IMG/VR virus record: IMGVR_UViG_3300005613_000001
Location: 186,001-250,000 of that record
DNA: 64,000 nucleotides
Strand: one strand, 5' to 3'
Shown: positions 25,685 to 45,539 of the stretch, piece by piece
How the letters are laid out: every line of letters starts with the position of its first letter
Position numbering within the stretch: the first letter of the stretch is position 1
Program-made: the position numbers and the translations under genes
The notes under the pieces: generated by a model
What the model was told of the DNA's origin: nothing
Database searches by the model: none
What the model saw: the letters and a program-made list of their open reading frames with translations, nothing else

Positions 25685-26152
25685 TTCAGGTTCTATAACT
25701 TTCGTTTCAATCACTGTTCCATTTCCTAAATCATCTACACTATCAACAAACTGGTCAAGGTTTTTCATTTCAATGAGACTCCAATGAGGATCATCTTCAG
25801 GGACATTCTCTGGTTTCGTCCAATAAAACTGCTCGAATTTATATTTATAGATTTTTTCAGCTACATCTTCCACCGACATGCCGGAATGTAAATCTTCCGC
25901 CATTTCTCCACACACCCTCAATGAATCACCTTCAACAGCGCCTCCTAATTTTCTCAGCAAGATAGCACATTCTTGAGCTTTATACGTATTCACCAGCAAA
26001 TTAAGAATATCGCGTTTTAAGTTGCCATCTACGAATTCAACAATAGCCGTATACTTAGCCATTGTTTGCCCTCGCTCGGGCTTATGATTTCTATTCACTT
26101 CAAAAAAGTGTTCATGAAAATTAGATTCATCAATTATCAGTTCTTCTGTCAT
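25661..26152 (-). CDS. Hypothetical protein
   Basis: Probable ATG at 26152 (MTEELIIDE), with GGAG upstream inside the dnaE 3' end. Confidence 0.55.
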   Translation of the reverse strand: MTEELIIDESNFHEHFFEVNRNHKPERGQTMAKYTAIVEFVDGNLKRDILNLLVNTYKAQECAILLRKLGGAVEGDSLRVCGEMAEDLHSGMSVEDVAEKIYKYKFEQFYWTKPENVPEDDPHWSLIEMKNLDQFVDSVDDLGNGTVIETKVIEPESEVPEGS

Positions 26153-28991
26153 TATTTTCTCCCCATTCCATAACGAACACACGGCTATCTCTCTCTTTGG
26201 GAGGTAGCATATGTCGCTTATGTCTTTGTGGGCTATCTAGTGTATATCCAAATTTAGTAGGCGGTTGAACCCTAATACGTAAAAGGTTAGCGCCTGTGAA
26301 TTCTTCTTCAAATCGTTCCCAATCATTGGCCCAGACAGTTACATATTGTCTTTCTCCATTACCATCTTCAACCCATATATTATAATTAAACCCCTTACCA
26401 TTTTTCCAATCTCTTTTTTTATGAGATACAACAACCACTTCTACAGGGCCAACAGTAGCACCATCCCGCATTTCTAACCGTAATTGAGAAAATGTGCAAC
26501 CTGTATAATCTGGGCTTTTCTCTAAAGGGTGGTTCCAAATGAATCCCAGATACTTAGTCTCCGCCGATTCAGGGGAAGTATAGATTTCTTCTAATTCTTT
26601 TGGAATATAAGTATCATCACTTGTAGGATCAAATTTATCAAATGTGAATGGATTTTCGTCTGCTTCCGCCTCTTTTTTAAGATATCCTTTGATGGATCTT
26701 TCTCGTTTGCCCCATAAAGTCTTTAATCTTTTCCATTTATTCAGATTCTTCTTTTGAACTTTCCCATATTTAGGACCAGGAGTGCGACATACTTCCTCAA
26801 CAATGTCATCTTCATCAAACAATTGTTGCCACAATTCTAAATTAGACTCATCAAACGTTGCCAATTCATCATGGTCAGCAAGTATTTCTTTCAACTCACT
26901 ATCATACCTATCCAAAGTTTTCTGGTATCTCTTCCCACGATCTATCCTATTTTTCTCCGCAGCCTTAAAGTTTTCGTAATATTTATACAATGTAACGGGA
27001 TCGCCCTCATCAAAAAGATTAAGACCCAAAAGCGGCTTGATAACTGTGGCATCTGTACCAAAGAATCTTAAGAACTGTTCAAGAGATGCATAGGGCTGTC
27101 CTTGAACAATTTTCTCAGCATTTGACTCACCCACCCCTTTGATATTTGAAAGTCCAAAATAAATCTTATCATCAGGCGAAGGCTCTTCATTCTCTTGGAT
27201 GATTGCAAATCTCACATTTGATTTACTAATATTGACTGGCTCTACGGGGATATCATGAATTACCGCCTCAGTTTTATACTCTCTAATTTTGTCCTCTTTT
27301 GTTTCACAGCTTAGAATACCAGCGTAGAATTCAAGTGGGTAATGGGCTTTTAGCCAAAGAAGTCTTGAGCTTACATAAGTGTAGGCTACCGCGTGGCTTT
27401 TGTTAAATCCATAAGCCGCGAATGCTTCAATTTGATCCCATAGGAATCTAGTATTTGCTGCTGCGGCTGTTTGGTGGATATTTTCTTTTGTGAGTTTGGA
27501 CGGATATTGAAGTTTATACAAATAAGCAACGTATCCCAGAGATTTAGCGTAAGCATTCTCCATACCTTCATAAAATGCATAATTCGCCACTTCTCGTTCT
27601 AATTCTTCAAATGAATCTTTATGGAGTCCAATCAGAGGCGTAACAACTTCTTTTGCATCTTTCGGGATTTCGGGCTCACAATCACGTACTAATATTTTAG
27701 CCCCATTTTCAAGAAACATCTCTTTATACTTACCAAAAATCTCAACCTTCTTCTTACTAATAGCCTTTCTCACTTTTTCAGTGTGACTATCAGGAACCCC
27801 ACCAATATATTGGAGAACCTTCATAACCTGTTCTTGATAAGCCATTACCCCGTAGGTATTCCCTAGAATACTTTCCATAGCTGGGTGTATCGTATATGGT
27901 TCTTCTCCCTTCTTTCTTTTTACATACTTCTCCGCCATGCCCATTCCCAACGGACCAGGGCGATATAAGGCTGTGTACGCTACCAAATCATCGAAACTTG
28001 TAACGCCTCCTTGTTTTACCAATGATCTTATTCCAGGGGAATCAAATTGGAACACGCATTTTAAATCCCCCTTGTTTGCCATTGCAATCGCTTTGGCATC
28101 ATCTAGATAAGCCGTATCTGACCAATCCCGTTGTCCAGGTAATGCGCAGATTGAATCCAAACCATGACGAGCTTTCACTAATTGACAAATTCTACCAATT
28201 TGTTCCAAGTTCGTAATTACAAGAAGATCAAATTTTACCAGACCCAATGGCCCAAGCTCCTGTGCATTCAATCCCTCAACAAAGGCAGAGGTAATTTGTT
28301 CAGCCCTATCAACCACAAGGGGAACAAAATTACCAAGAGGTTTATTAGAAATAATCAAACCCGCAGCATGCTTGCCCATGCTCTTATTGCGATTTGTGAG
28401 CTTTCTAGCCGCATTGTAAATATCAGGATTCGCTTCACAAAACTCTGCAAGGGCAGGATTTAATCGCAGTGCGTCTTCCCAAGTAACCGCATCACCCTCT
28501 TCATCTTTATCTACTAAATATTTGGTAATTGCCACCATTTCATCCCGACTCTTACCATAAACCTTAGCAATATCAATAAGAGAGCTACGCATACCAAACG
28601 TATTATAACTGCCGATATTGCAAACCCGTTCTGGACCGAAGGCATTAGGTGCCCATTCCTCCTTCAAATAATCTCGTATTGTCTTGTGGAAGTCTACATC
28701 TACATCAGGCATATCCCCATCAAATTCAAAAACAGGCTTCTCATTAATATCAAAATCAGGAACCAAATTTAAAAGATAAGCTACCAAGAGATTGTTTTGA
28801 TTAACAGGATAACGGATTTTCTTTTCTTGAAACTCATCGTATAAATCAACAAAATATTGAGCTTCATTCTTGGTTTTTATAGCCTTAATCTCCTCAGACA
28901 ATCGCCCCTTGTGTAGATCATCCTCTAAACCCCGCCTCTTTAAAGCGCTAGCACACAAATAAATCAGTCTATCTTGGTAGTTCATAAGCAT
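26130..28991 (-). CDS. dnaE: DNA polymerase III alpha (DnaE), C-terminal catalytic polypeptide of a split enzyme
   Basis: MPDVDVDF catalytic motif, GKHAAGLII, KFDLL, VFQFDS, ALYRPGP, YQEQVM, YGFNKSHA, GLSNIKGVG, C-terminal OB fold; no PHP domain; start probably 28991 or 28985. Confidence 0.92.
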   Translation of the reverse strand: MLMNYQDRLIYLCASALKRRGLEDDLHKGRLSEEIKAIKTKNEAQYFVDLYDEFQEKKIRYPVNQNNLLVAYLLNLVPDFDINEKPVFEFDGDMPDVDVDFHKTIRDYLKEEWAPNAFGPERVCNIGSYNTFGMRSSLIDIAKVYGKSRDEMVAITKYLVDKDEEGDAVTWEDALRLNPALAEFCEANPDIYNAARKLTNRNKSMGKHAAGLIISNKPLGNFVPLVVDRAEQITSAFVEGLNAQELGPLGLVKFDLLVITNLEQIGRICQLVKARHGLDSICALPGQRDWSDTAYLDDAKAIAMANKGDLKCVFQFDSPGIRSLVKQGGVTSFDDLVAYTALYRPGPLGMGMAEKYVKRKKGEEPYTIHPAMESILGNTYGVMAYQEQVMKVLQYIGGVPDSHTEKVRKAISKKKVEIFGKYKEMFLENGAKILVRDCEPEIPKDAKEVVTPLIGLHKDSFEELEREVANYAFYEGMENAYAKSLGYVAYLYKLQYPSKLTKENIHQTAAAANTRFLWDQIEAFAAYGFNKSHAVAYTYVSSRLLWLKAHYPLEFYAGILSCETKEDKIREYKTEAVIHDIPVEPVNISKSNVRFAIIQENEEPSPDDKIYFGLSNIKGVGESNAEKIVQGQPYASLEQFLRFFGTDATVIKPLLGLNLFDEGDPVTLYKYYENFKAAEKNRIDRGKRYQKTLDRYDSELKEILADHDELATFDESNLELWQQLFDEDDIVEEVCRTPGPKYGKVQKKNLNKWKRLKTLWGKRERSIKGYLKKEAEADENPFTFDKFDPTSDDTYIPKELEEIYTSPESAETKYLGFIWNHPLEKSPDYTGCTFSQLRLEMRDGATVGPVEVVVVSHKKRDWKNGKGFNYNIWVEDGNGERQYVTVWANDWERFEEEFTGANLLRIRVQPPTKFGYTLDSPQRHKRHMLPPKERDSRVFVMEWGENNDRRTDN

Positions 28992-29031
28992 AAATATAAT
29001 TGATTCTCTATAAATCGTCAAGGGAGACAAT

Positions 29032-29793
29032 ATGAAACGAGCATTATTAGTTGGTATAAATAATTACCAGGAACCAGGAAGTGATTTGTCAGGCTGTTTA
29101 AACGATGTGGCATTCATGCAAGCCCATATTCGCAAATATGGATTTGAAGAAATGCAAACGCTTAAAAACAGCCAAGCAACTAAGAACAATATATTGACCG
29201 CACTCACCAATTTAGTTGATAGTTCCGAGGCGGGAGATAAAATTCTATATTACCACAGCGGTCACGGAACTCGCGTGGTAGATGGCTTTGATGGAGATGA
29301 AACAGACAGCATGGATGAATGCCTTGTCTCCTACGATCACGATTGGATGGAACCGCTTCGTGACGACCTTATTGCCAAAGCAATCAGTGGCATCCACCCA
29401 AAAGCACGCCTCTATTTAATTATAGACACCTGCCACAGCGGGACTATCACTGATATTATATCAAATGGGAAAATAAAATCTATCCCAATGCCACCAGAAA
29501 TGGAAGAATATGCTTTACGAAAGGAATTAAAAGTCAAAAGAGATGTTCGCCCTAAAACATTAAACCATATTCTTTTATCAGGATGCAAACCCCATGAATA
29601 CAGCTATGAAGCAGTAGTAGATGGGAAAATCAGAGGATTAATGACATGGGGTTTTATTAAAACCACACAGCGAAGAAAGCCCTGGAATAGAGTGATTTCA
29701 GCCGTTAGAAAACAAGTTACCAGACAACAACCAGGACAGCATCCTGTGTTGGCGGGGAAACCTAGACTTAGAAAAGAATTAATATTTAAGTAA
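29032..29793 (+). CDS. Caspase-family (C14, metacaspase-like) cysteine protease
   Basis: KRALLVGINNY, LSGCLND, YHSGHG and DTCHSG His-Cys dyad. Confidence 0.88.
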   Translation: MKRALLVGINNYQEPGSDLSGCLNDVAFMQAHIRKYGFEEMQTLKNSQATKNNILTALTNLVDSSEAGDKILYYHSGHGTRVVDGFDGDETDSMDECLVSYDHDWMEPLRDDLIAKAISGIHPKARLYLIIDTCHSGTITDIISNGKIKSIPMPPEMEEYALRKELKVKRDVRPKTLNHILLSGCKPHEYSYEAVVDGKIRGLMTWGFIKTTQRRKPWNRVISAVRKQVTRQQPGQHPVLAGKPRLRKELIFK

Positions 29794-29807
29794 CCCTAAA
29801 TTAAGTT

Positions 29808-30461
29808 ATGATTGTAGCTACGTATTTAACAGATTCTCACAAACAACTCTACGAGGAGTTTTTTGAACCGTCTGCTACTAAAAATGGGTGGGAAATCTAC
29901 AAAGTGGAAGGGCCGCAGGTTGGGTGCGGGCACTTTGGCGAGCCAGATTGGCCGGAAATGATGAGGCGGAAAGCTCGGGCAATGTATGATGCTATATGTA
30001 CTTACCCAAATGAAATCATACTATATGCCGATTGCGACATATATTTTGCCCGAGACTTCAACTGTAAGAAGCTTCTGGGAGATAACCTCTTGGCAGCCCA
30101 GGTAAGCGACAGAAGAGAAATGTGTGCAGGCTTAATGATAATTAATTGCACGCAAGAAATTAAAAGGATGTATAGAAAAATATATCGCTCTAAGAGATTC
30201 TATCAGCCAGGGAATCTAATGAGCGATCAAGATGCATTAAATCACTTTGTAAAAAAAGATAAAATCCCTCGCAAACTCATACCTAGACATCTATTTTGGT
30301 GTCCAGCTATTGTGAAGCGATGGGAGAGATGGCAAGAAGTGGATTCAATTGAACAAATTCAACCTATACCTAAAACTATACTAGCTGCCCATGCTAATTG
30401 GTGTAGGGGTCTTGAATTAAAAAAGGAAATTTTAAACTACGTGAAACAATGCATAAATTAA
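29808..30461 (+). CDS. Nucleotide-diphospho-sugar transferase (GT77-like)
   Basis: LYADCDIYF DxD, CAGLM, SDQDALN, AHANW. Confidence 0.7.
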   Translation: MIVATYLTDSHKQLYEEFFEPSATKNGWEIYKVEGPQVGCGHFGEPDWPEMMRRKARAMYDAICTYPNEIILYADCDIYFARDFNCKKLLGDNLLAAQVSDRREMCAGLMIINCTQEIKRMYRKIYRSKRFYQPGNLMSDQDALNHFVKKDKIPRKLIPRHLFWCPAIVKRWERWQEVDSIEQIQPIPKTILAAHANWCRGLELKKEILNYVKQCIN

Positions 30462-31042
30462 AACACACTCACATGAGAACTAAAAGGAATTCGCCAGGAC
30501 TCCATAAGCTCTGTAATTCGATCCCAGAAAAACACAGAAATCTTCTTGTAGAAATTGGAAGTTTCTACGGAGAATCCACAGCAATCTTTGCAGGGCACTT
30601 TAAACAAGTAATCGCAATTGATCCTTGGGATTTCAAAGGCTGCAACGAATTAAATAAGGGTTCAAAGAATAGCAGCGAGAAGCTAATCACAGGAAAAATG
30701 GCTGAGGAGCGATTTGACGAAAATGTAGGCAAAATAGAAAATATTAAAAAAATCAAAGCATACGACCATGATGTAGTTGACTCTTTTGAAGACAACTCCA
30801 TCGATTGCATCTATATTGACAGCATACACACTTTTGAAGCGTGTGGGCTCACGATATTAAGATGGTGGCCCAAAGTTAAAAACTATGGATACATAGCGGG
30901 ACACGATTTTACGCCAATGTGGCCGGGTATCCAAAAAGTGGTAAAAATAATAGCACAAATGACAAAACAAAGAATGCGCCGATTTAAAGGGGATTGTAGT
31001 TGGCTACTACAAAAAAGAGTTTTCACCCCGCATCAAGTATAA
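30449..31042 (+). CDS. Class I SAM-dependent methyltransferase (Methyltransf_24-like)
   Basis: VEIGSFYGES, AIDPW, IYIDSIH, IAGHDF. Confidence 0.8.
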   Translation: MHKLKHTHMRTKRNSPGLHKLCNSIPEKHRNLLVEIGSFYGESTAIFAGHFKQVIAIDPWDFKGCNELNKGSKNSSEKLITGKMAEERFDENVGKIENIKKIKAYDHDVVDSFEDNSIDCIYIDSIHTFEACGLTILRWWPKVKNYGYIAGHDFTPMWPGIQKVVKIIAQMTKQRMRRFKGDCSWLLQKRVFTPHQV

Positions 31043-31424
31043 CTTCTAACAAATTCTTATCTCCCACCTTCTCATAAACCAAACTTGTAATTGCCATTCT
31101 CTGAACCTCATATCCCACCTTTGCTAAATCTTCAGTCATGTATTGTGCAGCGACACTATTGCAAGAATGTACCACCACCTTTTTAACATCGGGCTTATTT
31201 ACCGCCATCCATCTAACAACTTCGCTACCTGTATTCGGATGAGCAGGATCAACATAGACCTCCCCACCTAAATCATGGTCCAAAAAAACAATGTCCCACG
31301 GTTCCTCAGCCGCCTCTAATACTTCAATACATTCAGAGGCGGTTGAGGTAACCGTGGCGTATGGCGCAAAGCTGCGGAATAACCTTGTTCTCTCAGGCGA
31401 ATCATCAAGCCATAACACATTCAT
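31023..31424 (-). CDS. Cyclic-phosphate-processing receiver-domain protein
   Basis: LWLDD, IVFLDHDLG, TGSEVVRWM, VHSCN. Confidence 0.7.
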   Translation of the reverse strand: MNVLWLDDSPERTRLFRSFAPYATVTSTASECIEVLEAAEEPWDIVFLDHDLGGEVYVDPAHPNTGSEVVRWMAVNKPDVKKVVVHSCNSVAAQYMTEDLAKVGYEVQRMAITSLVYEKVGDKNLLEVILDAG

Positions 31425-32233
31425 TCTTTTCTATTCCTTCTCTTAAACAACATCATACCAAAAAATGCCGTCAAAAGCAAAGCGATCTGGGATGGTTCCG
31501 GCACTCTACCCATCAAGTTATCATTTCCACATTCCATTGTGAAGTGCGTATAAAACTCATCGCCCGCTGACGCCAAGTATGGCCCATCATCCATGAATCC
31601 CAAATCAATACCTCTAATTCGATAGTGCCAAGTATGGTGACCATCTGCGCCTGTGAAGCCTGTCTCGGCATCAGTTAAATTACTCTCGTACAAGAAAGCC
31701 CCTTCATCTATTGCCTGTCCACCGGAAACATAGCGGACAGGATTCGCTATATCCATCTCCGGTCGTGTTGCTAAACTTAGAATTGAATCGGAACCAATTT
31801 CATAAACTGTGTATTGGTTGCTATCAAAATTCAATCTAATGGCATAATTATAACCAAAGATGTTTGGCATTGTGCCACTACCTGTTCCCGCCGCTGCATC
31901 ACCATAAATTGGTTTCTGACGAGCGATAAAAATGTCGCCCGAATCGTACCCCTCATAGCCCGTCGCAAAGTTAAAACCCCCAACCATACCAAGTTGTCGC
32001 CCTTCTAGGAAGACTGACTCTAAATCATACTTTTGTGTGCCGTGACTATCAGGTTCTACTTCCTGATCTTCGTGAATCCCCTCTCTGGCATCATCGCCAG
32101 CCCACCAGGGATCGTGGGGGCGGGCACCATAGGCAATTGAGTCATCAAAGATAGTAATGTCAGTGGCTTCGCCAAGTGCGTAGCCCGAGGCCATTGCCCA
32201 ACACACCACAAAAATTGTAAAGAACCTCATCAC
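31421..32233 (-). CDS. PEP-CTERM sorting-domain surface protein
   Basis: N-terminal signal peptide; C-terminal VPEPSQIALLLTAFFGMMLFKRRNRKE (VPEP, TM helix, basic tail). Confidence 0.9.
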   Translation of the reverse strand: MMRFFTIFVVCWAMASGYALGEATDITIFDDSIAYGARPHDPWWAGDDAREGIHEDQEVEPDSHGTQKYDLESVFLEGRQLGMVGGFNFATGYEGYDSGDIFIARQKPIYGDAAAGTGSGTMPNIFGYNYAIRLNFDSNQYTVYEIGSDSILSLATRPEMDIANPVRYVSGGQAIDEGAFLYESNLTDAETGFTGADGHHTWHYRIRGIDLGFMDDGPYLASAGDEFYTHFTMECGNDNLMGRVPEPSQIALLLTAFFGMMLFKRRNRKE

Positions 32234-32301
32234 ACACCTCCATTCGAGTAGTGGAAGAAAAAACGATCCATTTTTACATCATACCACAAATAGGCTGACT
32301 G

Positions 32302-33156
32302 TTAAGCAAATTTCTTGCGAAGCCACCATCTTTTGAGTTGCTGCAATGGATGGCGATTACCCCCCCATAGAAAGCCCCTCTTTAACATGTGGCGGTAGGC
32401 GTCAAACTGAAAATAATAGGGGGCTTGCGACACTTCACCCCGCCCCAAAAGAATTTTAAGAGCCTCAGCCGAAGCGACTCCGCTACACAACTGACAAGCT
32501 AGAGAAGCTGAGGGGCCTTTGCCGGTATCAGGTTCTACCTTATCAAAATCTAAATAGGTAATATGAGTATGCGAAGGTGCAAGTCCTACAGCAAATGCCA
32601 CAAGTTTATCCATATGATCCATTGAATCATTTAAATCAAAGTAATCATCAAATGACATACCTGTTGGGTGGAATGAAAGCCAGGCTGTACTAAAGCCCAC
32701 GGGGCCTGCTGTGACTGCCCAGATGCCCCTTTCACGCGCGGTGGCGAACAACAAGCGTCTAGCGTCAATAGAAAAGAAATCAATACCATCAACAAATAAA
32801 TCGGCATCATCAAGGAATCTAGAAACGTTGTCTTGCGAGATGGGTTCATGAAAAATGCGAAAATCAATATTAGGATTGATAGCCAGGGCCATATCAACCA
32901 TTGATTCAACTTTACTATGACCTATCGTAGCTGTTGTTGCTCCACACTGACGATTGAAATTAGCAACTTCAAATGTATCAGGATCAGCAATTGTAAATTT
33001 GCCAACCCCCAGGCGAGTCAAGGTAAGCAAATGAATACCCCCGACACCACCCATGCCAGCAATTGCTACCCGACTATTGCGAACAACACTCTGTTCATCT
33101 GAGGCGATCAAGCCCTGATTGCGGGCAAAAGCCTCTTCGTAAGACCAAGAATCCAT
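32302..33156 (-). CDS. ThiF/MoeB/E1-family adenylyltransferase
   Basis: VAIAGMGGVGG, ADPDTFEVANFNRQ, LFVDGID, ACQLCSG; start ATG 33156 (alternative TTG 33171). Confidence 0.85.
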   Translation of the reverse strand: MDSWSYEEAFARNQGLIASDEQSVVRNSRVAIAGMGGVGGIHLLTLTRLGVGKFTIADPDTFEVANFNRQCGATTATIGHSKVESMVDMALAINPNIDFRIFHEPISQDNVSRFLDDADLFVDGIDFFSIDARRLLFATARERGIWAVTAGPVGFSTAWLSFHPTGMSFDDYFDLNDSMDHMDKLVAFAVGLAPSHTHITYLDFDKVEPDTGKGPSASLACQLCSGVASAEALKILLGRGEVSQAPYYFQFDAYRHMLKRGFLWGGNRHPLQQLKRWWLRKKFA

Positions 33157-33479
33157 TTTAAGATTATCCAAATACTAAGCCCGGTAATGTATACTAAGAA
33201 CACCGGCCACCAAAAGAAAACAGCTTTTAGTAAAACGGGCAAATCGTACCTTATAAAATCACATGGGATATCTCGGGTGTCATAGAGAAACACGCCGGTA
33301 AAAAACAAAATGAATACCGGCCACCAGAAAACGTAAGTCGTAAATGTTTGCCACGCTATGCTTGGCATTTCTCTGACGGTCTGCCAAAATCCTTTTCTAT
33401 AGACAGACACTTGCCGATAGGCAAATGGGAACAGGAGTTGGTCGCCGTCTTTCTTGCGTTCCACGGTAATCCAGGGCAT
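33108..33479 (-). CDS. Membrane protein with a duplicated FWWPVF helix
   Basis: Two similar TM segments, VFWWPVFILFFTG and FFWWPVFLVYITG. Confidence 0.5.
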   Translation of the reverse strand: MPWITVERKKDGDQLLFPFAYRQVSVYRKGFWQTVREMPSIAWQTFTTYVFWWPVFILFFTGVFLYDTRDIPCDFIRYDLPVLLKAVFFWWPVFLVYITGLSIWIILKWILGLTKRLLPAIRA

Positions 33480-33898
33480 TCCTTAAACCACCATTTTAGA
33501 TTCCAATAGATAGGAAACAAAAACCAACCAACCGTCCAGGGTATGAAAAGCACAAGCCAAATCAGATGCCAAATAATAATGGCAATCCACACCTTGTCTG
33601 TATCAAAGCAAATTCTTTTGTTGTTTTCCTTTAATGCTTGATCTTGCTTACCCTTAGATATCCCTTCCCACCTTCCTAAAAACCACCACGGCGCAGTTTT
33701 ATTTTCTTCATGAGGCAAAACATGATTAAAATGTAAAGCATGACCTTTTTCATTTCTTACAATAAAGTGATAAGGCCATATTGGAGAATCTGAATTTACT
33801 CCAACAAGACTTTTTACTTTGCCCTTCATGAAAAGATAAAAAGTAGCAAAGAAACAATTACCATAAAATTCCTTTGGTATCTGCACGGCTCCCTCCAA
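33356..33898 (-). CDS. Hypothetical membrane protein
   Basis: 180-aa ORF with a Trp-rich TM segment; overlaps the next gene by 124 nt. Confidence 0.5.
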   Translation of the reverse strand: MEGAVQIPKEFYGNCFFATFYLFMKGKVKSLVGVNSDSPIWPYHFIVRNEKGHALHFNHVLPHEENKTAPWWFLGRWEGISKGKQDQALKENNKRICFDTDKVWIAIIIWHLIWLVLFIPWTVGWFLFPIYWNLKWWFKECPGLPWNARKTATNSCSHLPIGKCLSIEKDFGRPSEKCQA

Positions 33899-33931
33899 TG
33901 TGTACAGATATCTACCGTTATTAACGGCATT

Positions 33932-35005: not shown

Positions 35006-35076
35006 TGTACCACGCTCTCCTTACGGTACATTTTTGACCTCCCACAATAAGTTGCCAATCCATTGATGTTAATTCC

Positions 35077-37507: not shown

Positions 37508-37519
37508 TTTAGAATCCCT

Positions 37520-37672: not shown

Positions 37673-37776
37673 AATTTATCCTTTCTTGCTTTCGGTACAA
37701 TTCCTCTAATATAGATAGTAACAAAAGAGGCGAATTTTGACAACATTTGTTGTTATATATTACAATGCTTATGGCA

Positions 37777-38340
37777 TTAGTAGGGATTATTATGTTCTAC
37801 CACCGCTTCACAAAATTCTATAAGTTCATTGCCATCCCAAGTATTTTTAGCATATTGAGCCATTAAAGATACAAATTGAATATTATCTTTAGTGTAAGGT
37901 TTAGACGAATCAATTCGATCTAAACTTGCTCGCTTTGGATGATACATTTTAATCTTTTCAGCTTTTGCAGAACGAGATTGTGCCCTAATATCTAAATCCC
38001 AGCCAGTGTAAGGGCATTTTCCTCCTTGTTCGTCCCATTGATTCACTAAATCCTCAACCGACAAATCAAAACCATCATTTCTACCTTTATCAGAAAATTG
38101 ACGACGTTTGGCAGAGCGAAAAAAATTACGAAATGGAGTTAGTGAATTTTTTCGGGTGTGAGAGACAAGATTGGGATGCACAACACCCTTGGGCGGCTTC
38201 TCTAACTGATTAAAATTATCTTTTCCAACACACTTTCTACTACAATACGATCTCATTCCTCTTTTTTTTCGAAATTCAACTACCGATTTTTCTCTTTCAA
38301 AATAATTTCCACAATGAGAACATTTAACTTTAACATTCAT
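37777..38340 (-). CDS. Free-standing HNH-like putative homing endonuclease
   Basis: CSHC...YCSRKC N-terminal motif; CPYTG, SLDRIDSSKPYTKDNIQFV. Confidence 0.7.
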   Translation of the reverse strand: MNVKVKCSHCGNYFEREKSVVEFRKKRGMRSYCSRKCVGKDNFNQLEKPPKGVVHPNLVSHTRKNSLTPFRNFFRSAKRRQFSDKGRNDGFDLSVEDLVNQWDEQGGKCPYTGWDLDIRAQSRSAKAEKIKMYHPKRASLDRIDSSKPYTKDNIQFVSLMAQYAKNTWDGNELIEFCEAVVEHNNPY

Positions 38341-38389
38341 ATATTTACCCAGCCATTACATTTTAATTTTATATATGGCTGGATAATAA

Positions 38390-38418
38390 AAAATCCACCA
38401 ATAATTTTGGTGGATTTT
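38390..38418. terminator. Intrinsic terminator hairpin downstream of tmRNA
   Basis: AAAATCCACCA / TGGTGGATTTT inverted repeat flanked by A/T tracts. Confidence 0.75.
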
Positions 38419-38420
38419 AG

Positions 38421-38772
38421 TGGAGAGGATGGGACTCGAACCCATGTCCACGACGAACTCACACAGGGGCATCTACGTGTGTAGTTTATTGTTCATTTTC
38501 TCGCATCATTACACTACAACAAACAAAAGTGTAAATCAACCAGCAACAAATCTTACTTGAGATCGTCGTTGCATGAACTCAAGAGTAGCCAACTTTTATG
38601 GCGAGACTTCAGACTCCGTTAGCTAAGGATTCTTTGTCTCGGGCTGCTTACGCAGCCATTTGAAGCGGAGCTTCGACAAATAAAGTTTTAATCGACTTTT
38701 AAAGTGGCCTGTCGATCAACCACTACACGCCACCCAAGCGCTTGTTTGTGTGTCGAAACCAAATTCCTCCCC
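38421..38772 (-). ncRNA. ssrA: tmRNA (transfer-messenger RNA)
   Basis: 5' GGGGAGG...TTTCGAC; 3' T-arm GGTTCGAGTCCC and CCTCTCCA. The acceptor stem has the G3-U alanine wobble; length 352 nt; internal tag ORF; CCA not encoded. Confidence 0.93.
38648..38677 (-). other. tmRNA tag reading frame, (A)VEAPLQMAA*
   Basis: UA at -5/-4 before GUC resume codon; ends GCT GCG TAA. Confidence 0.75.
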
Positions 38773-38976
38773 TTTTTTAAGGTTCTTTATGTATGCTTCT
38801 GTTTCCTCCTTTGCTGTGCCCATTTTAGCCAGCCAAACCTTCAACCGATCCAGCACTGTAGGATCACGGTCATATTCAGCCGCTATAAACATACGCAAGA
38901 TAACAAATATTTGATTTGAAGTATAGTCTGAACTGTCTTCAAAATCAAATATTTCTTTGGAAGTAGGATGTATCAC
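38716..38976 (-). CDS. Hypothetical protein whose last 19 codons overlap the tmRNA 5' end
   Basis: 4-nt overlap start with the upstream gene; frame continues into ssrA. Confidence 0.5.
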   Translation of the reverse strand: MIHPTSKEIFDFEDSSDYTSNQIFVILRMFIAAEYDRDPTVLDRLKVWLAKMGTAKEETEAYIKNLKKGEEFGFDTQTSAWVACSG

Positions 38977-39215
38977 AGCAACTTTCTTGCTCTCGCAGAC
39001 CTTGCTTTCAAATCTTTTACTGCATCTCCCGGTACAATTTGAGGTTTTGGGGCGGCTCCACCTTCCTGTAATACCAACCCACCATTTGCATCCTTACCTA
39101 CATGGAATGCATGCCCGCCAGGGCCTATTTGTCTGACATTTTCTACGCCCATTTCTTTGAGCCAATCTACAACTTGTTGGTCTGTTTTACCAGCAATATC
39201 ATCCATCTTTTCCAT
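38973..39215 (-). CDS. Hypothetical protein
   Basis: ORF in operon. Confidence 0.5.
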   Translation of the reverse strand: MEKMDDIAGKTDQQVVDWLKEMGVENVRQIGPGGHAFHVGKDANGGLVLQEGGAAPKPQIVPGDAVKDLKARSARARKLL

Positions 39216-39516
39216 CTTTTTTCTCCTCTGATTCGACCAATTTTCTTAATTCATCAAAAGCCTCAGAATCAGGAAATTTTCCCAATCTCATTGTCGGGTG
39301 ACTTCCTACACCATTAAACATATCAGCAAACAACTGCCAATTACCGTCTTCTACTTCTCGTCCCCCCGAGCTATTCCCCCCTTTATCACACCACTCCCAA
39401 TAAAGGCGGTGACCAAATCCACCATCAACTCTTTTTTCTTCAACAAGAATACGCCAACGGGGCAGCAAACAATGCTTCAATAATTGTTCATCGGTCATTT
39501 TATTACTCCCATACAA
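39199..39516 (-). CDS. Hypothetical protein
   Basis: ORF in operon. Confidence 0.55.
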   Translation of the reverse strand: MYGSNKMTDEQLLKHCLLPRWRILVEEKRVDGGFGHRLYWEWCDKGGNSSGGREVEDGNWQLFADMFNGVGSHPTMRLGKFPDSEAFDELRKLVESEEKKDGKDG

Positions 39517-39727
39517 AATCTACTTCAGTGGAAAACTCATCACAGTGAGAACAATAACCACCACACACACCACCTTGACCGCGATGTAGAGTTTTAATCC
39601 CAGAACAATCTCTTCCACACTTCTCACAAACCACCATGAATTTAACATACTCAAGAGATGAATTTTGCACTTCATCTATAATTCTGGCTTTGCCTTTTAC
39701 TAATCTAGCAGCCATTTTAATCACCAT
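39503..39727 (-). CDS. Small zinc-finger protein
   Basis: CEKC...CGGYCSHC. Confidence 0.5.
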   Translation of the reverse strand: MVIKMAARLVKGKARIIDEVQNSSLEYVKFMVVCEKCGRDCSGIKTLHRGQGGVCGGYCSHCDEFSTEVDFVWE

Positions 39728-39946
39728 TGGGCTAGGAAGAAATGAGCCACTTCACCGGCTGAGTGGTGGTCATCCGGGTTATCATCATCATTTGTCACTT
39801 GCCAAATAGTTGCCGTTCGTTGCCGTTACAATAGGGTCAATATCTGTTTTTCTCTCCCATGCTTCAATAGGCGCAAGGACATTGAAAACATTAAAGAGTT
39901 TCAGTTGTTTTACTTCTTGAAACTGTCATGACGACCTACAGCTTGT

Positions 39947-40130
39947 AAAAATTGCGGGCTCTTTTTCAGAACCGTTATTTGAACCCGCTGATAGGAGGGC
40001 AGGCGGCGCGATTGAGTTTGCTTTGCCTACCGCCAGCAGTGCCGCTAAGGACGGTTCTAGCCTACGGAATACTGGCTCCAGTTATGGCGTGCTTCCGCAC
40101 AGACCACACCCACGACAACGACAAGCGTTG
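39947..40130 (-). other. GC-rich multi-stem intergenic segment, candidate structured RNA/attenuator
   Basis: Several inverted repeats and a terminator-like hairpin with a U tract; family not recognised. Confidence 0.35.
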
Positions 40131-40133
40131 CTC

Positions 40134-40601
40134 CTACTTTTCCCTAAGTTTTCTGTAATGTTTCCAGCGATGATCGAACTTATCCCGTAATCGCAAATAT
40201 TCACGGTATTCGGGATCATCTGTCAATTTTTTGAGGCGTTTCTTTACTTCAGCAGGAGTACGACTATTTCCTTTACTGAAGTCTGCTTTTTCTATTACCC
40301 GCCTCAATTTGACTTCAACTTCAACTAAGCCACACCCTTTATGTCCTGGTACGGCTTCGGGATCGGGATAAACGATGGTGCCTAATCTATCGCCACCAAT
40401 TTCGTAATCCCACTCTACTTGCTCCATAAACCCTACTACAATGCCATCCTTGTCCCCCCATAGTGGGGTGTCAAATGTGCCGTCTTCGTGCCTCATGATT
40501 GAGCGGGTCGTCCCCGCGATTGCTAGTGGTCCTATCCTAATCATACCATAGAAAAAAGGAACGTCAACTGGCTTGGGAAATTGTTCATAACAATAATACA
40601 T
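40134..40601 (-). CDS. Hypothetical protein
   Basis: Probable start ATG 40601; the ORF-track extension overlaps pspC antisense. Confidence 0.55.
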   Translation of the reverse strand: MYYCYEQFPKPVDVPFFYGMIRIGPLAIAGTTRSIMRHEDGTFDTPLWGDKDGIVVGFMEQVEWDYEIGGDRLGTIVYPDPEAVPGHKGCGLVEVEVKLRRVIEKADFSKGNSRTPAEVKKRLKKLTDDPEYREYLRLRDKFDHRWKHYRKLREK

Positions 40602-40626
40602 AACAGTATCACAGGAGGATACTATT

Positions 40627-41025
40627 ATGTATAGAGACAAAGAAAATGCCATTATCGGCGGTGTTTGTGCTGGATTAGCGAATGCAGTTGGAATGCCAAT
40701 CTTAGTTATGAGATTGATCTTCCTTATTGCGATTTTGTGGGTGGGCGTTTCCATTTGGATTTACCCAATTTTATGGTTACTAATGCCCGTAGCAAAAGAC
40801 AAAAAGGAATTCCTTGATGGTTTAAAGCAATTGAAACTTGACAAGGAAAACAGAGTGCTTGCCGGTGTGTGCGCCGGAATTGCCAACATGATGGGGCTAC
40901 CGCATATTGTAGTCCGGTTGGCGTGGATAATCTTCAGCTTGTGGTTCGGTTTCGGTATTATTGCTTATTTAATCATGTGGATGCTAATGGCTTGTAATAC
41001 AAAAGACGAAAAAGCAGAAGAATAA
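40627..41025 (+). CDS. pspC: Tandem PspC-domain membrane protein
   Basis: Two repeats of R/KDKENxxxxGVCAGxA...RL + TM helix; GGAGG RBS. Confidence 0.85.
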   Translation: MYRDKENAIIGGVCAGLANAVGMPILVMRLIFLIAILWVGVSIWIYPILWLLMPVAKDKKEFLDGLKQLKLDKENRVLAGVCAGIANMMGLPHIVVRLAWIIFSLWFGFGIIAYLIMWMLMACNTKDEKAEE

Positions 41026-41076
41026 TTAAATATAAAGGCTAGATAAAGTAATAAAACAAGCTAGAGGTATCAGATT

Positions 41077-42096
41077 ATGGCTTATGCATCATTTCAAGAT
41101 TATTTAGAAGTTAAGAAAAATTGCAAATGCAAAATGGCTGTTGAGAAACCGCCCGTTGAAGAAGTGCCCGATTATCACGGTGACACTAATAAAGCAGGTG
41201 AAGAGGGTAAAGAAAAACGAAAAGGCATCAAAAATCACCAAGTTCAAGAACGTGCCCGCACGTTTCAAGAATACCTAAATGCTAAAGGTAGCATGCAGGA
41301 TAAGCCTGGAAGTGGCATGGGTGATGACCATTTCACCGATGAAAAAGCACCCCCAAAGGGTTCAATTCCTCCAGCCAATGTAAGTGGCGGAAAGCCTCAC
41401 CCTTATAAAGCCGCATCTATGTCCACTGGGGACAAAGCCTTTGGCGATATGGGTGTTGATCCACCGTATGAGCCAAAAACTGATACCTCTAAGCTTGAAA
41501 CTAAGCCTACTATGCCCAAAAGTGAAAAGGGTGTTCCACAAGCCGAATCATTGATTTCCAACAAAAGTCTAATTTCTGTTACCCAACTAATGTCGGAACT
41601 AAATGATAAAGTTGTGGATTATGATATCCCCTCCATTACCGTTGGTAGGGACAAATTTCATCCGAACCCCTTGGAAGCCGTAGAATATGTCGCATATCTC
41701 GTAGGTGAAAATAGAAACCTACTCGATGTATTCCTCAGAATTCTTAAAAAAAGAGGCGTTAAATTAATGGAAGCCATCGCCCCGCCTATCGGATTTGAAG
41801 GCGATGAAACCGAAGCTGAAGTTCTTAAAAAAAAGAAACCCGACTTAGGGGACTTTGAGGACGAAGAAGAAGAAACGCCAGCAGAAGATGAATTTGGGGC
41901 GGAAGATGAGGAAGATCCTGACGATGGGTTTGGAGCAGGTGACGAAGAAGATGAATTTGGTGGCGAAGAAGAAGCCCCCGAAGATGAAATGGGACCGCCC
42001 GAGATGGAACGCCCAAGGCGACATAAAAATCGCAAAAGAGGGTTCGGACCAGAAATAGAAGGCCCCGGAATGGGTGCTGGACCAGAAATGGCGTAA
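41077..42096 (+). CDS. Low-complexity acidic protein with a capsid-targeting-like N-terminus
   Basis: MAYASFQDYLE start, internal RTFQEYL, D/E-rich tail; TAAATA 41027-41032 and TAGATA 41040-41045. Confidence 0.6.
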   Translation: MAYASFQDYLEVKKNCKCKMAVEKPPVEEVPDYHGDTNKAGEEGKEKRKGIKNHQVQERARTFQEYLNAKGSMQDKPGSGMGDDHFTDEKAPPKGSIPPANVSGGKPHPYKAASMSTGDKAFGDMGVDPPYEPKTDTSKLETKPTMPKSEKGVPQAESLISNKSLISVTQLMSELNDKVVDYDIPSITVGRDKFHPNPLEAVEYVAYLVGENRNLLDVFLRILKKRGVKLMEAIAPPIGFEGDETEAEVLKKKKPDLGDFEDEEEETPAEDEFGAEDEEDPDDGFGAGDEEDEFGGEEEAPEDEMGPPEMERPRRHKNRKRGFGPEIEGPGMGAGPEMA

Positions 42097-42113
42097 CATT
42101 GCTTAATTAGGAT

Positions 42114-43244
42114 ATGAAGGTACTAGTATCAGGCTGCTTCGATCTAATCCACAGCGGCCATATCCAATTTCTTAAAGAAGCCGCTGAATACGGCGATCTA
42201 TATGTCTCCATTGGATCAGATCAAACAATCCAAGAACTAAAAAATAGAACTCCCATCTATAACGAGCAAGAACGCCTCTTTATTATGGAGTCTATCAAAT
42301 ATATTAAAAAAGCTTTTATCGCTCAGGGGTCTGGGACACTAGATTTCTTAAACGAATTAAAACAATTAAAGCCAGGGGCGTTTGTGGTCAATTCTGATGG
42401 TCATTCCCAAGAAAAGGAAGACCTGTGCAAAGAGCTAAAAATTAAATATATTGTCCTCAATCGGTCCCCCTACAAAACTCTTCCCGCTCGCAGTACATCA
42501 AAATTGCTTGGCGAAATAGAAATGCCCTATCGTATTGATTTGGCAGGAGGCTGGCTGGATCAACCGTGGGTTTCCAATATGGGGCACGGGCCTGTTATCA
42601 CCATCTCATTAGAAGCCTCACATATTTTCTTTAGAAGAAGCGGAATGGCTACCTCCACCAGAGAAAAAGCCATTAAATTATGGGGCTCTGGGATTCCTTA
42701 TGGTGACTACGAAGAAAATGCAAAACTCCTATTTTCTTATGATAATTTCCCCGATAAAGAGTTTGTTTCTGGTTCTCAAGATACATTGGGAATTGTCATG
42801 CCAGGAGTTAATAAATTAGACTATTCCGGTAAGTATTGGCCGGAAGCTATAGAGTCTATTGTAGATGATGACACTGCGCGTTGGTTAGAAGACCACATTC
42901 GCTTAGTCCCCTTATATCCAAGACCAAAAGACTATTCTGTGCTGTCCAATACCAATATTAAAGAAGAATATGTTAGAGGTTTAGCCTTCAATGCCCACAA
43001 AGTTTGGAAAGCAATTGAATTAAAACATGCCAGCATGTTAGGGCTACACGTAGAAAAGTGTTTCGGTGCCCAAGTGGCTATGTTCCCCAATATGATAACT
43101 CATAGAATAGCCAAAATAATCAAAAAATACAGAAATAAAATATTGGGAGTTAAAATATCAGGGGCGGGTGGGGGCGGATATCTAATCTTCATCACCGATC
43201 AAGATATAGAAAATTCAATTAAAATTAAAGTGAGAACTCAATAA
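42114..43244 (+). CDS. Cytidylyltransferase-like nucleotidyltransferase fused to a GHMP sugar kinase (HddA-like)
   Basis: SGCFDLIHSGH (HIGH motif); RIDLAGGWLD, RSGMATS, SGSQD, KISGAGGGG. Confidence 0.85.
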   Translation: MKVLVSGCFDLIHSGHIQFLKEAAEYGDLYVSIGSDQTIQELKNRTPIYNEQERLFIMESIKYIKKAFIAQGSGTLDFLNELKQLKPGAFVVNSDGHSQEKEDLCKELKIKYIVLNRSPYKTLPARSTSKLLGEIEMPYRIDLAGGWLDQPWVSNMGHGPVITISLEASHIFFRRSGMATSTREKAIKLWGSGIPYGDYEENAKLLFSYDNFPDKEFVSGSQDTLGIVMPGVNKLDYSGKYWPEAIESIVDDDTARWLEDHIRLVPLYPRPKDYSVLSNTNIKEEYVRGLAFNAHKVWKAIELKHASMLGLHVEKCFGAQVAMFPNMITHRIAKIIKKYRNKILGVKISGAGGGGYLIFITDQDIENSIKIKVRTQ

Positions 43245-43708
43245 ATCACTGCCGTAGCGTAAGAAAGCTCTACTTTACACCCATAATCCATCAACTTAAG
43301 CTGCCACAGTCTAGCCACATCTAAACTATCAAAATCCCTAATCCGATCTCTTCCTTGTACGGTCCAATACTGAACATGGAAATCAAACCCTACAGATGAC
43401 ATTTGCGTTTCAAACCCCATCTCCTTCATTATATGATTGAAAGACCTTGCATTAGCCTCAAAATCAGTATGTGGGTCACGCTCAAACCGCCTCGTTATTT
43501 TATATCCATTAGTATTGTATTTTAATGTATATGTTGGTGCGGGAGGTTCTGGTTTAGCTTCAGGTAGAGATGCTTTTGGACATGGAACGGGAACAACGGG
43601 ACGTGTAGGTTTTTCGCGGCGGGAACATGAAATTAATATTATGGGAACACCTATAACAATTGACAGTATTAAAATATTAATGAATCGCATTTTCAACCTC
43701 ACAACCAT
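43238..43708 (-). CDS. Membrane-anchored protein, paralog of the next gene, SPOR-like repeats
   Basis: N-terminal TM helix; two F-x(4-6)-A-x-x-(F/W)-x(6)-G units. Confidence 0.5.
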   Translation of the reverse strand: MVVRLKMRFINILILSIVIGVPIILISCSRREKPTRPVVPVPCPKASLPEAKPEPPAPTYTLKYNTNGYKITRRFERDPHTDFEANARSFNHIMKEMGFETQMSSVGFDFHVQYWTVQGRDRIRDFDSLDVARLWQLKLMDYGCKVELSYATAVIY

Positions 43709-44150
43709 ATTCTGTTAATTTAAGCATCCACAAATCTGCTGTTTCTTTGTCGGTGAATTCCCGCCTCTGTTTATTTGCCCAATATACTACAGCCCACATA
43801 TGTATTGTGGTTCCATCATGAAAAAGATTAGCCATATCATTAGGGTTATAGGGCAATTCGTAAGTCAAAGGATATGGCGGCTTGTTTTTGTGAATTTCTG
43901 TTTTAAAACCAAAATCATGCAACACTTTACAGAAATTATCAGCACTGCCTTGGGTATCAAATCTCTTAATCTTCTTCTCACAACTGTATTCTAAAACAAC
44001 CTTAGGTTTAACAGTAGGAGAAATAGAATTAAAAGGAGGCGTCGGTTGTAAATCCATTACGCGGGCGGTACGCGGGAATAGCCAAACCCCTAGAATAACA
44101 CCTAAAAGGGTTCCAACAATCGCACAAAGAACTAAACGTTTATCCACCAT
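43677..44150 (-). CDS. Membrane-anchored protein, paralog of the previous gene
   Basis: Shared pattern REFTDKETADLWMLKLTEYGCEVE vs RDFDSLDVARLWQLKLMDYGCKVE. Confidence 0.5.
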   Translation of the reverse strand: MVDKRLVLCAIVGTLLGVILGVWLFPRTARVMDLQPTPPFNSISPTVKPKVVLEYSCEKKIKRFDTQGSADNFCKVLHDFGFKTEIHKNKPPYPLTYELPYNPNDMANLFHDGTTIHMWAVVYWANKQRREFTDKETADLWMLKLTEYGCEVENAIH

Positions 44151-44153
44151 ACT

Positions 44154-45539
44154 TTATATATCCTCAATGGGCACAGGATCAATATTATTAAACCTTAACT
44201 TCATTGAGCGACCGCCCCTTGATTCACTAAGGAAACGCGAGAAAAGAAGATCGTGCTTAATGGGATCAACGTCGGTAATACCCAAACAATAACAGGTCAA
44301 TGCCCCTACGGCTGATCCTCTTCCGGGGCCAACTGCCTCTGATCCATCTCCCCAGCCTAGTAATCTAGGGAAGGCAATTCTAGCCTCATCTGTCATCTGT
44401 TTTTGCATTAAGAAGTAAGTAGAGAATCCTTTTCGGCATATCAATTCATATTCTTCCTTAATCCGATTTAAATACCTATTTTCCGTGGGCAACCTTCTAG
44501 CTTTAACTCCCTCTATGATTACCTCTTTGAACATTTCATCAGCATCAGGAAACTGGGGAAGTTTAATACTACGGTCTAATTGTACGCCTTTTGCTTTCTC
44601 GCATATTACAACCGTATTTTGTTTAGCTTGTCTAAAGAGATCGTCAGGGATTACTTGGCTATACTTCTTGAGCCACATTTGGTTGAGTTCATCTTCTGAC
44701 TTCATCCAAAGGTTAGTATCCTGTAGTTCAAAGAAATCCGCATCAGGATTGGCTCTCATTTTCTCTTCAATTTCAGCCATTGTTGTGTTGGTTTGAAGCA
44801 TCAACATCAATCGCTGCATCAAAGCATCTTCTTCACGGCAATAGTGACAATCATTTGTGACAACGAGAGGAATGCCATACCTGTCGTGTGCTTTAATAAT
44901 AAATTTATCAAAAGGTGTTTGTTTGTCAAAATCCAAAAGCATCATTTCCAAGTAAAAATTATCTGGAAACATCTGCTGATATTTTTCAACCATTGCAAAT
45001 CCAGCTTCATCCCCACCCTCGCAATGAAAGCCATCAAATGCTTGTCCTATCTCGCCATTATAACAGCCTGACGAGAATACGATTCCCTCTTTGTATTTCA
45101 GTAATTGCTCATGATTCACACGGGGTCGCTTTGGACGACCGCCCTGACCATTAATCCAAGCCCAAGAACTTAAATTAACCAGATTTGCGTATCCAATCTC
45201 ATTATAAGCTATAGCTAATAAATGGAAGCTTTTACGAAGATAAAGCTTTTCATTCTCAGTGAGGTTAGATTGGAAATCAGCATACTCATCCTTATTCCTT
45301 ACACCGGGTTGCATTGGGTTGAGATATAATTCACATGCGAAAACAGGATGAATGTCGTGTTTTTCACAAGTCTTAATCTGACGGGGGATAACCCCCATTT
45401 GCCCGTGGTCCGATATACAAAGAAACTTCTGATTTACCTGCTGAGAGTATTCTGCGTACTCTTCAGGGTGAGCGTAGCCATCAAGAAGTGAGAAGTGGCT
45501 ATGGCGGTGAAGGTGCTCAAAACCCACAATATCAATCAC
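44154..45539 (-). CDS. dnaE: DNA polymerase III alpha (DnaE), N-terminal PHP-domain polypeptide of a split enzyme
   Basis: HLHRHSHFSLLDG, SDHG, ACELY, NDCHY, GPGRGSAVG, LGITDVDP, LFSRFL; ends before the PDxDxDF motif. Confidence 0.92.
   Translation of the reverse strand: MIDIVGFEHLHRHSHFSLLDGYAHPEEYAEYSQQVNQKFLCISDHGQMGVIPRQIKTCEKHDIHPVFACELYLNPMQPGVRNKDEYADFQSNLTENEKLYLRKSFHLLAIAYNEIGYANLVNLSSWAWINGQGGRPKRPRVNHEQLLKYKEGIVFSSGCYNGEIGQAFDGFHCEGGDEAGFAMVEKYQQMFPDNFYLEMMLLDFDKQTPFDKFIIKAHDRYGIPLVVTNDCHYCREEDALMQRLMLMLQTNTTMAEIEEKMRANPDADFFELQDTNLWMKSEDELNQMWLKKYSQVIPDDLFRQAKQNTVVICEKAKGVQLDRSIKLPQFPDADEMFKEVIIEGVKARRLPTENRYLNRIKEEYELICRKGFSTYFLMQKQMTDEARIAFPRLLGWGDGSEAVGPGRGSAVGALTCYCLGITDVDPIKHDLLFSRFLSESRGGRSMKLRFNNIDPVPIEDI

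Follow-up and report, generated by a model that had tools for sequence, protein, structure and literature searches.

A full-size DnaE-type DNA polymerase encoded by two distant genes, with a degenerate duplicate at the junction, in a clade of very large phages

How can a family-C (DnaE-type) DNA polymerase work when its gene is cut in two within the region that forms the active site? The question is raised by a 64,000-nucleotide stretch of phage DNA, hereafter the window (bases 186,001-250,000 of the virus record IMGVR_UViG_3300005613_000001, 527,112 bp long and rated complete by CheckV), in which two minus-strand genes 15 kb apart each encode a part of such a polymerase. The first gene (44154..45539, window positions as throughout unless stated otherwise) specifies what we call the N-half and the second (26130..28985) the C-half. 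All the DnaE-type elements that we tested for (the PHP domain, the GS motif, the three catalytic carboxylates, the fingers, the helix-hairpin-helix (HhH) domain and the OB fold) are present, but on two chains: instead of a single-polypeptide catalytic core we found two open reading frames (ORFs) 15.3 kb apart, and a corresponding division in 12 other contigs. As argued below, the two products are probably subunits of one family-C polymerase that assembles non-covalently, with no splicing involved.

The N-half (461 residues, GTG start) can be aligned to M. tuberculosis DnaE1, T. aquaticus (Taq) alpha and E. coli alpha until the residue preceding the SMPDxDxDF strand, where a 20-residue tail takes over. 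The alignments to the M. tuberculosis and E. coli enzymes agree with a first-pass annotation of the window, which had described a PHP half ending just before the catalytic motif and prolonged by a short tail. The PHP core (residues 9-200, 44940..45515; Pfam PF02811, E = 6.6e-32) has a complete set of nine metal ligands, as that annotation had surmised: mapped on M. tuberculosis DnaE1, they are H11, H13, D20, H45, E70, H106, C159, D230 and H232, and they are invariant or nearly so across 115 relatives. The PHP domain is predicted to be an active proofreading nuclease. Residues 337-441 (44217..44531), termed module B, match positions 3-98 of the Pfam DNA_pol3_alpha profile and comprise the palm helices with the GPGRGS and LLFSRFL motifs. 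Module B contains R407-G408-S409 (44313..44321), the GS motif of the Pol-beta-like nucleotidyltransferase fold, and these three residues are invariant in the N-half alignment, as are R435 (in FSRFL) and R441. By alignment, G408 and S409 correspond to G425 and S426 of Taq alpha, and R435 to Taq R452; by analogy with the Taq ternary complex, we take GRGS and the FxRFL arginine to be contacts of the deoxynucleoside triphosphate (dNTP) triphosphate. An AlphaFold2 model of the N-half based on 115 homologues has a mean predicted local distance difference test score (pLDDT) of 90.8; it superposes on residues 1-399 of E. coli alpha with a Z-score of 34.6 (VIA-align), and, compared with the PHP domain in solved DnaE structures, its fold gives Z-scores of 30-36.

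The C-half takes over where the N-half leaves the canonical chain. Its open frame (26130-29030) matches positions 21-259 of the DNA_pol3_alpha profile and aligns with Taq alpha from residue 460 on. This frame reaches a TTG at 29030, and the first-pass annotation had placed the start at 28991; since the C-half relatives all start 86-92 residues ahead of PDxDxD, the start is more likely the second ATG, at 28985, which gives a protein of 951 residues. The 46-bp divergent intergenic region just upstream (28986-29031) contains the promoter-like TTGACG-17-TATATT, abutting the two candidate ATGs, and no Shine-Dalgarno sequence; the C-half mRNA may thus be leaderless or nearly so. The catalytic strand PDVDVDF (P93, D94, D96 and D98; 28689..28709) is invariant and aligned with residues 460-468 of Taq alpha, and the strand carrying the third catalytic carboxylate (K251-F-D253, 28227..28235), aligned with LLKMDFLGL of Taq alpha, is invariant too: D94, D96, D98, K251 and D253 do not vary across the C-half relatives. 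Then come the finger domain (27702..28199; Pfam PF17657, E = 4.4e-42), the HhH DNA-binding domain (HHH_6, 27009..27251; Pfam PF14579, E = 2.8e-11) and a C-terminal OB fold (model residues 826-951, 26133..26510), which matches the OB folds of SSB, PriB and RPA with VIA-align Z-scores of 8-9. Two large insertions, both already noticed in the first-pass annotation, differ in their distribution. The insertion of about 80 residues in the fingers (residues 431-512, 27450..27695) is lineage-specific, with a column occupancy of 0.18 among 105 relatives, and is unmatched in the alignment to Taq alpha. The other, helical and coiled-coil-like (residues ~661-825, 26511..27005, with model helices at 663-701 and 750-777), is clade-wide (occupancy 0.92). 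The AlphaFold2 model of the C-half, based on 105 homologues, has a mean pLDDT of 90.6.

The place of the cut modifies what was first supposed. The first-pass annotation had assigned proofreading and polymerase functions to separate polypeptides. The cut falls instead inside the Pol-beta-like palm, with GRGS and the FSRFL arginine on the PHP half and the carboxylates on the other, so that the polymerase site itself appears to be divided.

What, then, are the residues that precede the catalytic strand in the C-half? This segment (residues 1-92, 28710..28985), termed B', is a degenerate second copy of module B. The homology, which the first-pass annotation had claimed on sight, is visible solely by profile-profile comparison and fold mapping. 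Indeed, pairwise BLASTP of B' against the N-half gave no similarity (E = 0.98), a Pfam search with the first 105 residues of the C-half alone gave nothing beyond a chance match to DsrE, and phmmer and profile searches of the PDB sequences with the B' segment gave chance matches to translin or none. By contrast, when an alignment of the N-terminal ~90 residues of 38 C-half relatives was compared by hhalign with one of the C-terminal ~114 residues of 29 N-half relatives, 76 collinear columns were matched (probability 93.6%, E = 2e-7). For the C-half model, superposition on E. coli alpha begins at about residue 286 (global) or at residue 392 (core), and on Taq alpha at residue 393 (model residue 39; root-mean-square deviation (rmsd) 3.9 Å). 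The models of the two halves therefore overlap on E. coli alpha residues ~286-399, i.e. the two proteins share about 100 residues of the canonical chain. Conserved structural residues of B and B' correspond in the YFL helix and in the R..E pair of the RLxxEL helix. Where B has its GPGRGS loop, B' has a shorter one with N62 and N65, and the FxRFL arginine is absent from B'. Across the 105 C-half relatives E32 and N65 are invariant and N62 is nearly so; in the set of 38 sequences N62 is invariant. We conclude that the first ~90 residues of the C-half are a real, degenerate copy of the last ~100 residues of the N-half.

The tail of the N-half (residues 442-461, GGRSMKLRFNNIDP..., 44157..44216) looks like the reciprocal piece, a probable degenerate copy of the catalytic strand. 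In the tail, GGRSMKLRF..IDP, the opening SM is the one found ahead of the catalytic strand of ordinary DnaE, and the alternating pattern is the same, with the aspartates gone. G442, G443 and F450, together with the adjacent R441, are nearly invariant. Both the tail and B' are restricted to split or duplicated forms and are absent from two close relatives with an intact gene, the 595-kb LR756511.1 (1183-residue open frame, of which the ATG-initiated ORF is 1179 residues) and G005 (1328 residues), which have the canonical junction FLSKFRKDYPDVDVDF. In the isolated N-half model the tail is disordered (pLDDT <50), and in the C-half-only model the pLDDT is lowered around the catalytic strand.

These observations lead us to propose that the polymerase site is completed in trans, through docking of the N-half's module B onto the catalytic sheet that the C-half provides. 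The N-half would contribute the proofreading nuclease (PHP) and that part of the palm which binds the nucleotide (helix, GRGS loop, helix and FSRFL), and the C-half the three catalytic carboxylates, thumb, fingers, HhH domain and OB fold. With the GS elements on one chain and the carboxylates on the other, the active site would be complete in the heterodimer only. We find this arrangement somewhat more likely than not. Within the N-half, conservation is highest in module B (majority-residue fraction 0.78, as compared to 0.69 for the PHP core and 0.66 for residues 442-452 of the tail; the values for B' and the OB fold are 0.55 and 0.49), and this conservation, together with the invariance of R407, G408, S409, R435 and R441, is unexpected for a mere tether. 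A second contact can be envisaged. The upstream copy of the duplicated unit would have kept the GS loop and lost the aspartates (the tail), and the downstream copy, B', would have lost the GS loop and kept the aspartates. As the tail and B' are confined to the duplicated or split forms and are both conserved, and as the tail is disordered alone, we propose that the two dead pieces pair with one another just as B does with the catalytic strand, giving two reciprocal contacts between the subunits. The domain-swapped interface imagined in the first-pass annotation is thereby refined into a two-way swap, a plausible one, in which we place tentative, less than even confidence.

Several points weigh against completion of the site in trans. 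The AlphaFold model of the C-half alone sets B' roughly at the place of B in the solved DnaE structure 3e0d (rmsd 3.9 Å), and B' could accordingly be a working cis partner of the catalytic strand. The part played by GRGS and the FxRFL arginine in dNTP contact is presumed from the Taq ternary complex, and the homology between the tail and the catalytic strand is too short for statistical testing. Finally, a DnaQ-like exonuclease is also encoded (a weak DnaQ/RNase_T-like ORF of 193 residues at 265141-265659, minus strand, of the same genome, G000, outside the window), so that the PHP domain need not be the sole proofreader.

The first of these points can be extended into a different model, in which the C-half polymerizes self-sufficiently, with B' in the canonical palm place and N62 and N65 standing for the GS loop, while the N-half acts, like epsilon, as a PHP proofreader whose module B just docks. 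B' is indeed folded with a pLDDT of ~95 over its helices, approximately at the canonical site, in the C-half model; the conservation of N65 and N62 suggests a conserved loop function; and nine intact PHP ligands fit a proofreader subunit. However, a monomer prediction would by default put a homologous module in the canonical site, and B' lacks both triphosphate-binding elements. A docking role leaves unexplained both the invariance of GPGRGS, R435 and R441 and the higher conservation of B relative to the PHP core, and inteins in relatives target precisely the GS site of the N-half (see below). We consider this model, the main rival, rather unlikely.

Whether the division is peculiar to this phage was addressed by seeking relatives in 5.8 billion proteins. 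Stand-alone relatives of the N-half gave 1559 matches at E <= 1e-10 (candidates of 253-806 residues). Nearly all of the best 120 are 440-480 residues long and end with the same tail, the longer exceptions carrying an intein or other extra sequence. Similarly, the best 120 C-half relatives are nearly all 820-1000 residues long; none has a PHP domain, nearly all begin with B', and the longer exceptions again contain inteins or other extra sequence. The contigs that carry either kind of half reach 664 kb. When B' was used as a profile in an exhaustive search, 231 cluster representatives at 50% identity were recovered (124 with E <= 1e-10), with B' at residues 1-86 in almost all of the 231; this search supersedes an earlier region-limited search which, using a coarse word index, had found only 3 proteins. 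One truncated relative (P0287, 611 residues) carries an extra N-terminal domain of ~170 residues with a GAQTGAD motif ahead of B'.

Both halves are present together in 13 long IMG/VR contigs (12 in addition to this one), three of which are estimated to be 100% complete by CheckV, two of them with terminal repeats. The N-half gene lies upstream of the C-half gene on the same strand in 12 of the 13. The gap between them is 0.34 kb in G015, ~3 kb in G008, 4-6 kb in five contigs, 8-12 kb in four and 15.3 kb in the phage studied here; in one complete 511-kb genome the halves are in opposite orientation, 12 kb apart. The 0.34-kb gap of G015 holds an antisense ORF of ~93 residues (L084 2300-2580, minus strand) with a good Shine-Dalgarno sequence, which overlaps the 3' end of the N-half gene. 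Recurrence of one architecture in many independent contigs, combined with its conservation, excludes a misassembly, which the first-pass annotation had named as a possible refutation, as well as a pseudogene, and the sequence data support purifying selection on both halves across a large phage clade. The survey of related phages that the annotation had called for thus places the split clade-wide and, as described next, also reveals a single-chain form with both copies. Such halves are already in phage databases, unremarked, as four PHROGs families show (phrog_7513 and phrog_13169 of N-half length, phrog_11165 and phrog_12219 of C-half length). In the cultured phages from INPHARED that we inspected (GBK1, Riggi and Nanodon), DnaE is intact.

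How might such a division have arisen? The B' profile led to P0385, a single ORF of 1114 residues from a distant phage, on a 43.9-kb phage-like contig that is present in several sequencing runs. Its order is PHP, B with GPGRGS, a tail-like GRQNKYDFNF, a linker of ~20 residues, B', and PDIDLDF onward. By BLASTP it is collinear with residues 7-459 of the N-half (tail included) and 15-652 of the C-half (B' included) at 27-29% identity, and its PHP ligands, GS motif and aspartates are all intact. B and B' thus coexist in one functional-looking chain. In the IMG/VR contig L103, from a distant relative, the N-half stops at a TAG and the B'-bearing C-half begins two codons on, in the same frame; a remnant of an HNH endonuclease (3647-3826 of L103, plus strand; PF01844, 26 bits, E = 9e-6) overlaps the junction in another frame, and two sister sequences, L105 and L113, have an uninterrupted canonical junction.

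The simplest history compatible with these forms has four steps and begins with a duplication. One helix-GS-helix-strand unit of a phage dnaE would first have been duplicated in tandem within the gene, producing a P0385-like state; the two copies would then have decayed complementarily; a stop and a new start within the linker would have yielded states like those of L103 and G015; and accessory genes would have accumulated between the halves, with one inversion. The reverse order, in which the split came first and P0385 arose by a later fusion, may also apply. Trees leave room on a related point. The huge-phage clade has a support of 100. The two intact genes are basal, with weak support, in the tree of the N-part, whereas in that of the C-part they are nested within the split forms and the adjacent-gene form G015 is basal; monophyly of the split forms is not rejected by the approximately unbiased test (p = 0.22). 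The intact genes may be either ancestral or re-fused, both being compatible with the trees. In a tree of the B and B' segments, every B' is grouped against every B (support 99/95), a grouping subject to the caveat of long branches. Taken as a whole, a scheme in which complementary decay of a duplicated fold led to a reciprocal-swap two-subunit replicase, with all stages extant (both copies on a single chain, halves parted by one stop codon, and genes lying either side by side or dispersed) and with B' perhaps spread by an endonuclease, is less likely than not.

The last element of that scheme also has a stronger version, namely that B' and the junction are a mobile cassette spread by a homing endonuclease, which fractured dnaE in several lineages. 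It bears on how the split arose and can be combined with either functional model. The HNH remnant of L103, at a junction where a single TAG separates the halves and whose sisters are intact, may be a sign that an endonuclease fractured the gene or moved the B' junction, and the clustering of all B' modules against all B also speaks for a cassette. That clustering, however, may reflect long-branch attraction, and the collinear order in 12 of the 13 contigs fits an origin in situ followed by vertical descent. Moreover, an HNH gene lies between the halves in just two of the 13 huge-phage contigs, no more than chance given that these genomes are rich in them (2-9 per contig), so that a homing endonuclease as the general cause of the split is unsupported in this clade. 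In the window itself, an HNH/endonuclease VII-like gene (37777-38340, minus strand; phrog_3322, E = 2e-17) lies between the halves, 6-9 kb from each junction, and no link between it and the split could be demonstrated. A cassette origin is, all told, rather improbable.

Restoration of a single alpha chain, either by protein trans-splicing through an atypical split intein or by RNA trans-splicing, finds little to sustain it. The 20-residue tail and the N-terminal extension of ~90 residues superficially resemble the two parts, a short N-terminal and a long C-terminal one, of such an intein, and inteins are common in this protein family. Yet the extension is derived from the DnaE palm and not from a HINT domain, it lacks a C-terminal splice signature, and P0385 retains both tail and B' as internal protein parts. 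No Pfam intein domain was matched in either half, tail and N-terminal extension included, which upholds the earlier remark that intein signatures are missing, and no conserved His-Asn plus Cys/Ser/Thr signature precedes PDxDxD among the listed C-half relatives. Full inteins do occur in relatives, at three conserved sites, none of which is the split point: between G and S of GRG|S in the N-half (P0165, P0228 and the N-half of G007, i.e. L093), at GFNK|S of the C-half (P0246) and at the FQLE motif (the C-half of L103 being among the intein carriers). As for RNA splicing, a search of the region for group I and II introns with Rfam at a relaxed threshold returned the transfer-messenger RNA (tmRNA) gene as its sole match, and in one complete genome the halves are on opposite strands. 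We regard splicing of either kind as very improbable.

That the halves are decaying fragments of a broken dnaE or an assembly artefact, with another polymerase replicating the genome, might be argued from the PolA-like ORF described below and from the intact gene of the closest cultured or GenBank phage record, but it is effectively refuted by conservation, and hardly credible, since both ORFs are full length, the catalytic residues are invariant across more than 100 relatives of each half, the same split recurs in 13 long contigs that are independent of one another (three are estimated to be complete), and B' is found in 231 clusters at 50% identity.

The family-B polymerase profile PF00136 has no match anywhere in the 527-kb genome, and the only other polymerase-like match is one short PolA-like ORF (423 residues; 286869-287525, minus strand, of G000, outside the window). 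The profile of the beta-clamp N-domain, PF00712, has no match in the genome either, although a divergent clamp could escape it. The DnaE pair is very likely the replicase of the phage.

Among known systems, the pair resembles the single-chain DnaE alpha of E. coli, T. aquaticus and M. tuberculosis (DnaE1) and of phages GBK1, Riggi and Nanodon: the domain order (PHP, palm, thumb, fingers, HhH, OB) is the same, the catalytic residues are identical, and the PHP ligand set is as full as in M. tuberculosis DnaE1. It differs from them in consisting of two polypeptides cut before the catalytic strand, with B' and the tail as extra elements and with genes 15 kb apart. The cyanobacterial DnaE-n and DnaE-c are likewise encoded by two distant genes, but there a split intein ligates the products and the cut lies far downstream, after ~774 residues; the phage pair lacks an intein, its cut corresponds to about residue 399/400 of the E. 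coli enzyme, and its junction occurs in duplicate. Essential replication enzymes made as two intein-free polypeptides are represented by the gp43 family-B polymerase of some T4-like Aeromonas phages, the NrdA of Aeh1 (with the mobE endonuclease) and the PolB of Methanothermobacter. The non-covalent reassembly of these enzymes is what we propose here for a different enzyme family; the link to a homing endonuclease is found here only in the relative L103, and we know of none among them with an overlapping, complementarily degenerated duplicate at the cut.

A precedent comes from group 2.2 jumbo phages, in which a minimal Pol III alpha is split into an NTP-binding and a Mg/DNA-binding protein encoded by distant genes (Iyer et al. 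2021, Viruses 13:63, PMC7824862). Pol III alpha has thus been cut before at this NTP-binding/Mg-binding boundary, which here runs between the GS-bearing helices and the DxD strand. The minimal form, however, lacks PHP and the other Pol III domains and exists alongside a family-B polymerase (PMC7824862), whereas the form described here is full size, with PHP, fingers, HhH and OB, in a genome without a PF00136 match; and where B and B' overlap here, no overlap or duplicate is described for the minimal form (PMC7824862). In surveys of bacterial C-family polymerases, the only broken genes mentioned are intein-split or frameshifted ones. The literature that we searched describes two split forms, the cyanobacterial split-intein DnaE and the minimal form (PMC7824862), and in none of it did we find a DnaE that is split without an intein, is full size with a PHP domain, and has degenerate copies that overlap.

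The 15-kb spacer (29031..44153) consists of accessory genes. As the first-pass annotation had counted more than 20 genes between the PHP half and the PDVDVDF half, so we found about 22 ORFs, on both strands, plus the tmRNA gene, which is full-length (38418-38772, minus strand; Rfam RF00023, 127 bits, E = 1e-49). A caspase-like peptidase of family C14 (29032-29793, plus strand), a cREC-REC protein (cyclic-phosphate processing receiver domain; 31023-31424, minus strand) and a ThiF/E1-like protein (32302-33171, minus strand) are clustered near the C-half gene and may form a conflict or signalling gene set. A sigma-70-like factor (33932-35005) and an RNA ligase (35349-35984) are encoded on the minus strand, and the spacer further contains glycosyl- and methyltransferases, a sulfotransferase, a radical SAM protein and a cytidylyltransferase in addition to the HNH/EndoVII-like endonuclease mentioned above. 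Immediately upstream of the N-half gene lies a gene for a ClpP-like protease (45965-46690, minus strand). The G+C content of the window is ~40%, and a marine metagenome is the sole DNA sequencing run found to contain part of it, 7% of the sampled words being matched.

Work on family-C replicases has dealt with single alpha chains, the exceptions being the intein-ligated cyanobacterial enzyme and a minimal split form reported once, briefly, from jumbo phages. The DnaE described here is full size, is divided across its active site and is not spliced. A large clade of the biggest known phages retains it in this state and can be recognized by two proteins, a PHP half that stands alone and terminates in GGKSMKLRF, and a polymerase half that starts with B'. 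The finding should be of real interest to specialists of polymerases and of phage evolution. If the active site is indeed assembled in trans, the two halves would amount to a replicase that works by natural fragment complementation, from which one could learn what portions of the palm another chain is able to provide and how split polymerases might be engineered. The decay of the duplicated half-domain, complementary in its two copies, would in turn make this a clear case of gene fission by duplication and degeneration, in which a candidate intermediate (P0385) and the adjacent-gene stage (L103 and G015) are still extant.

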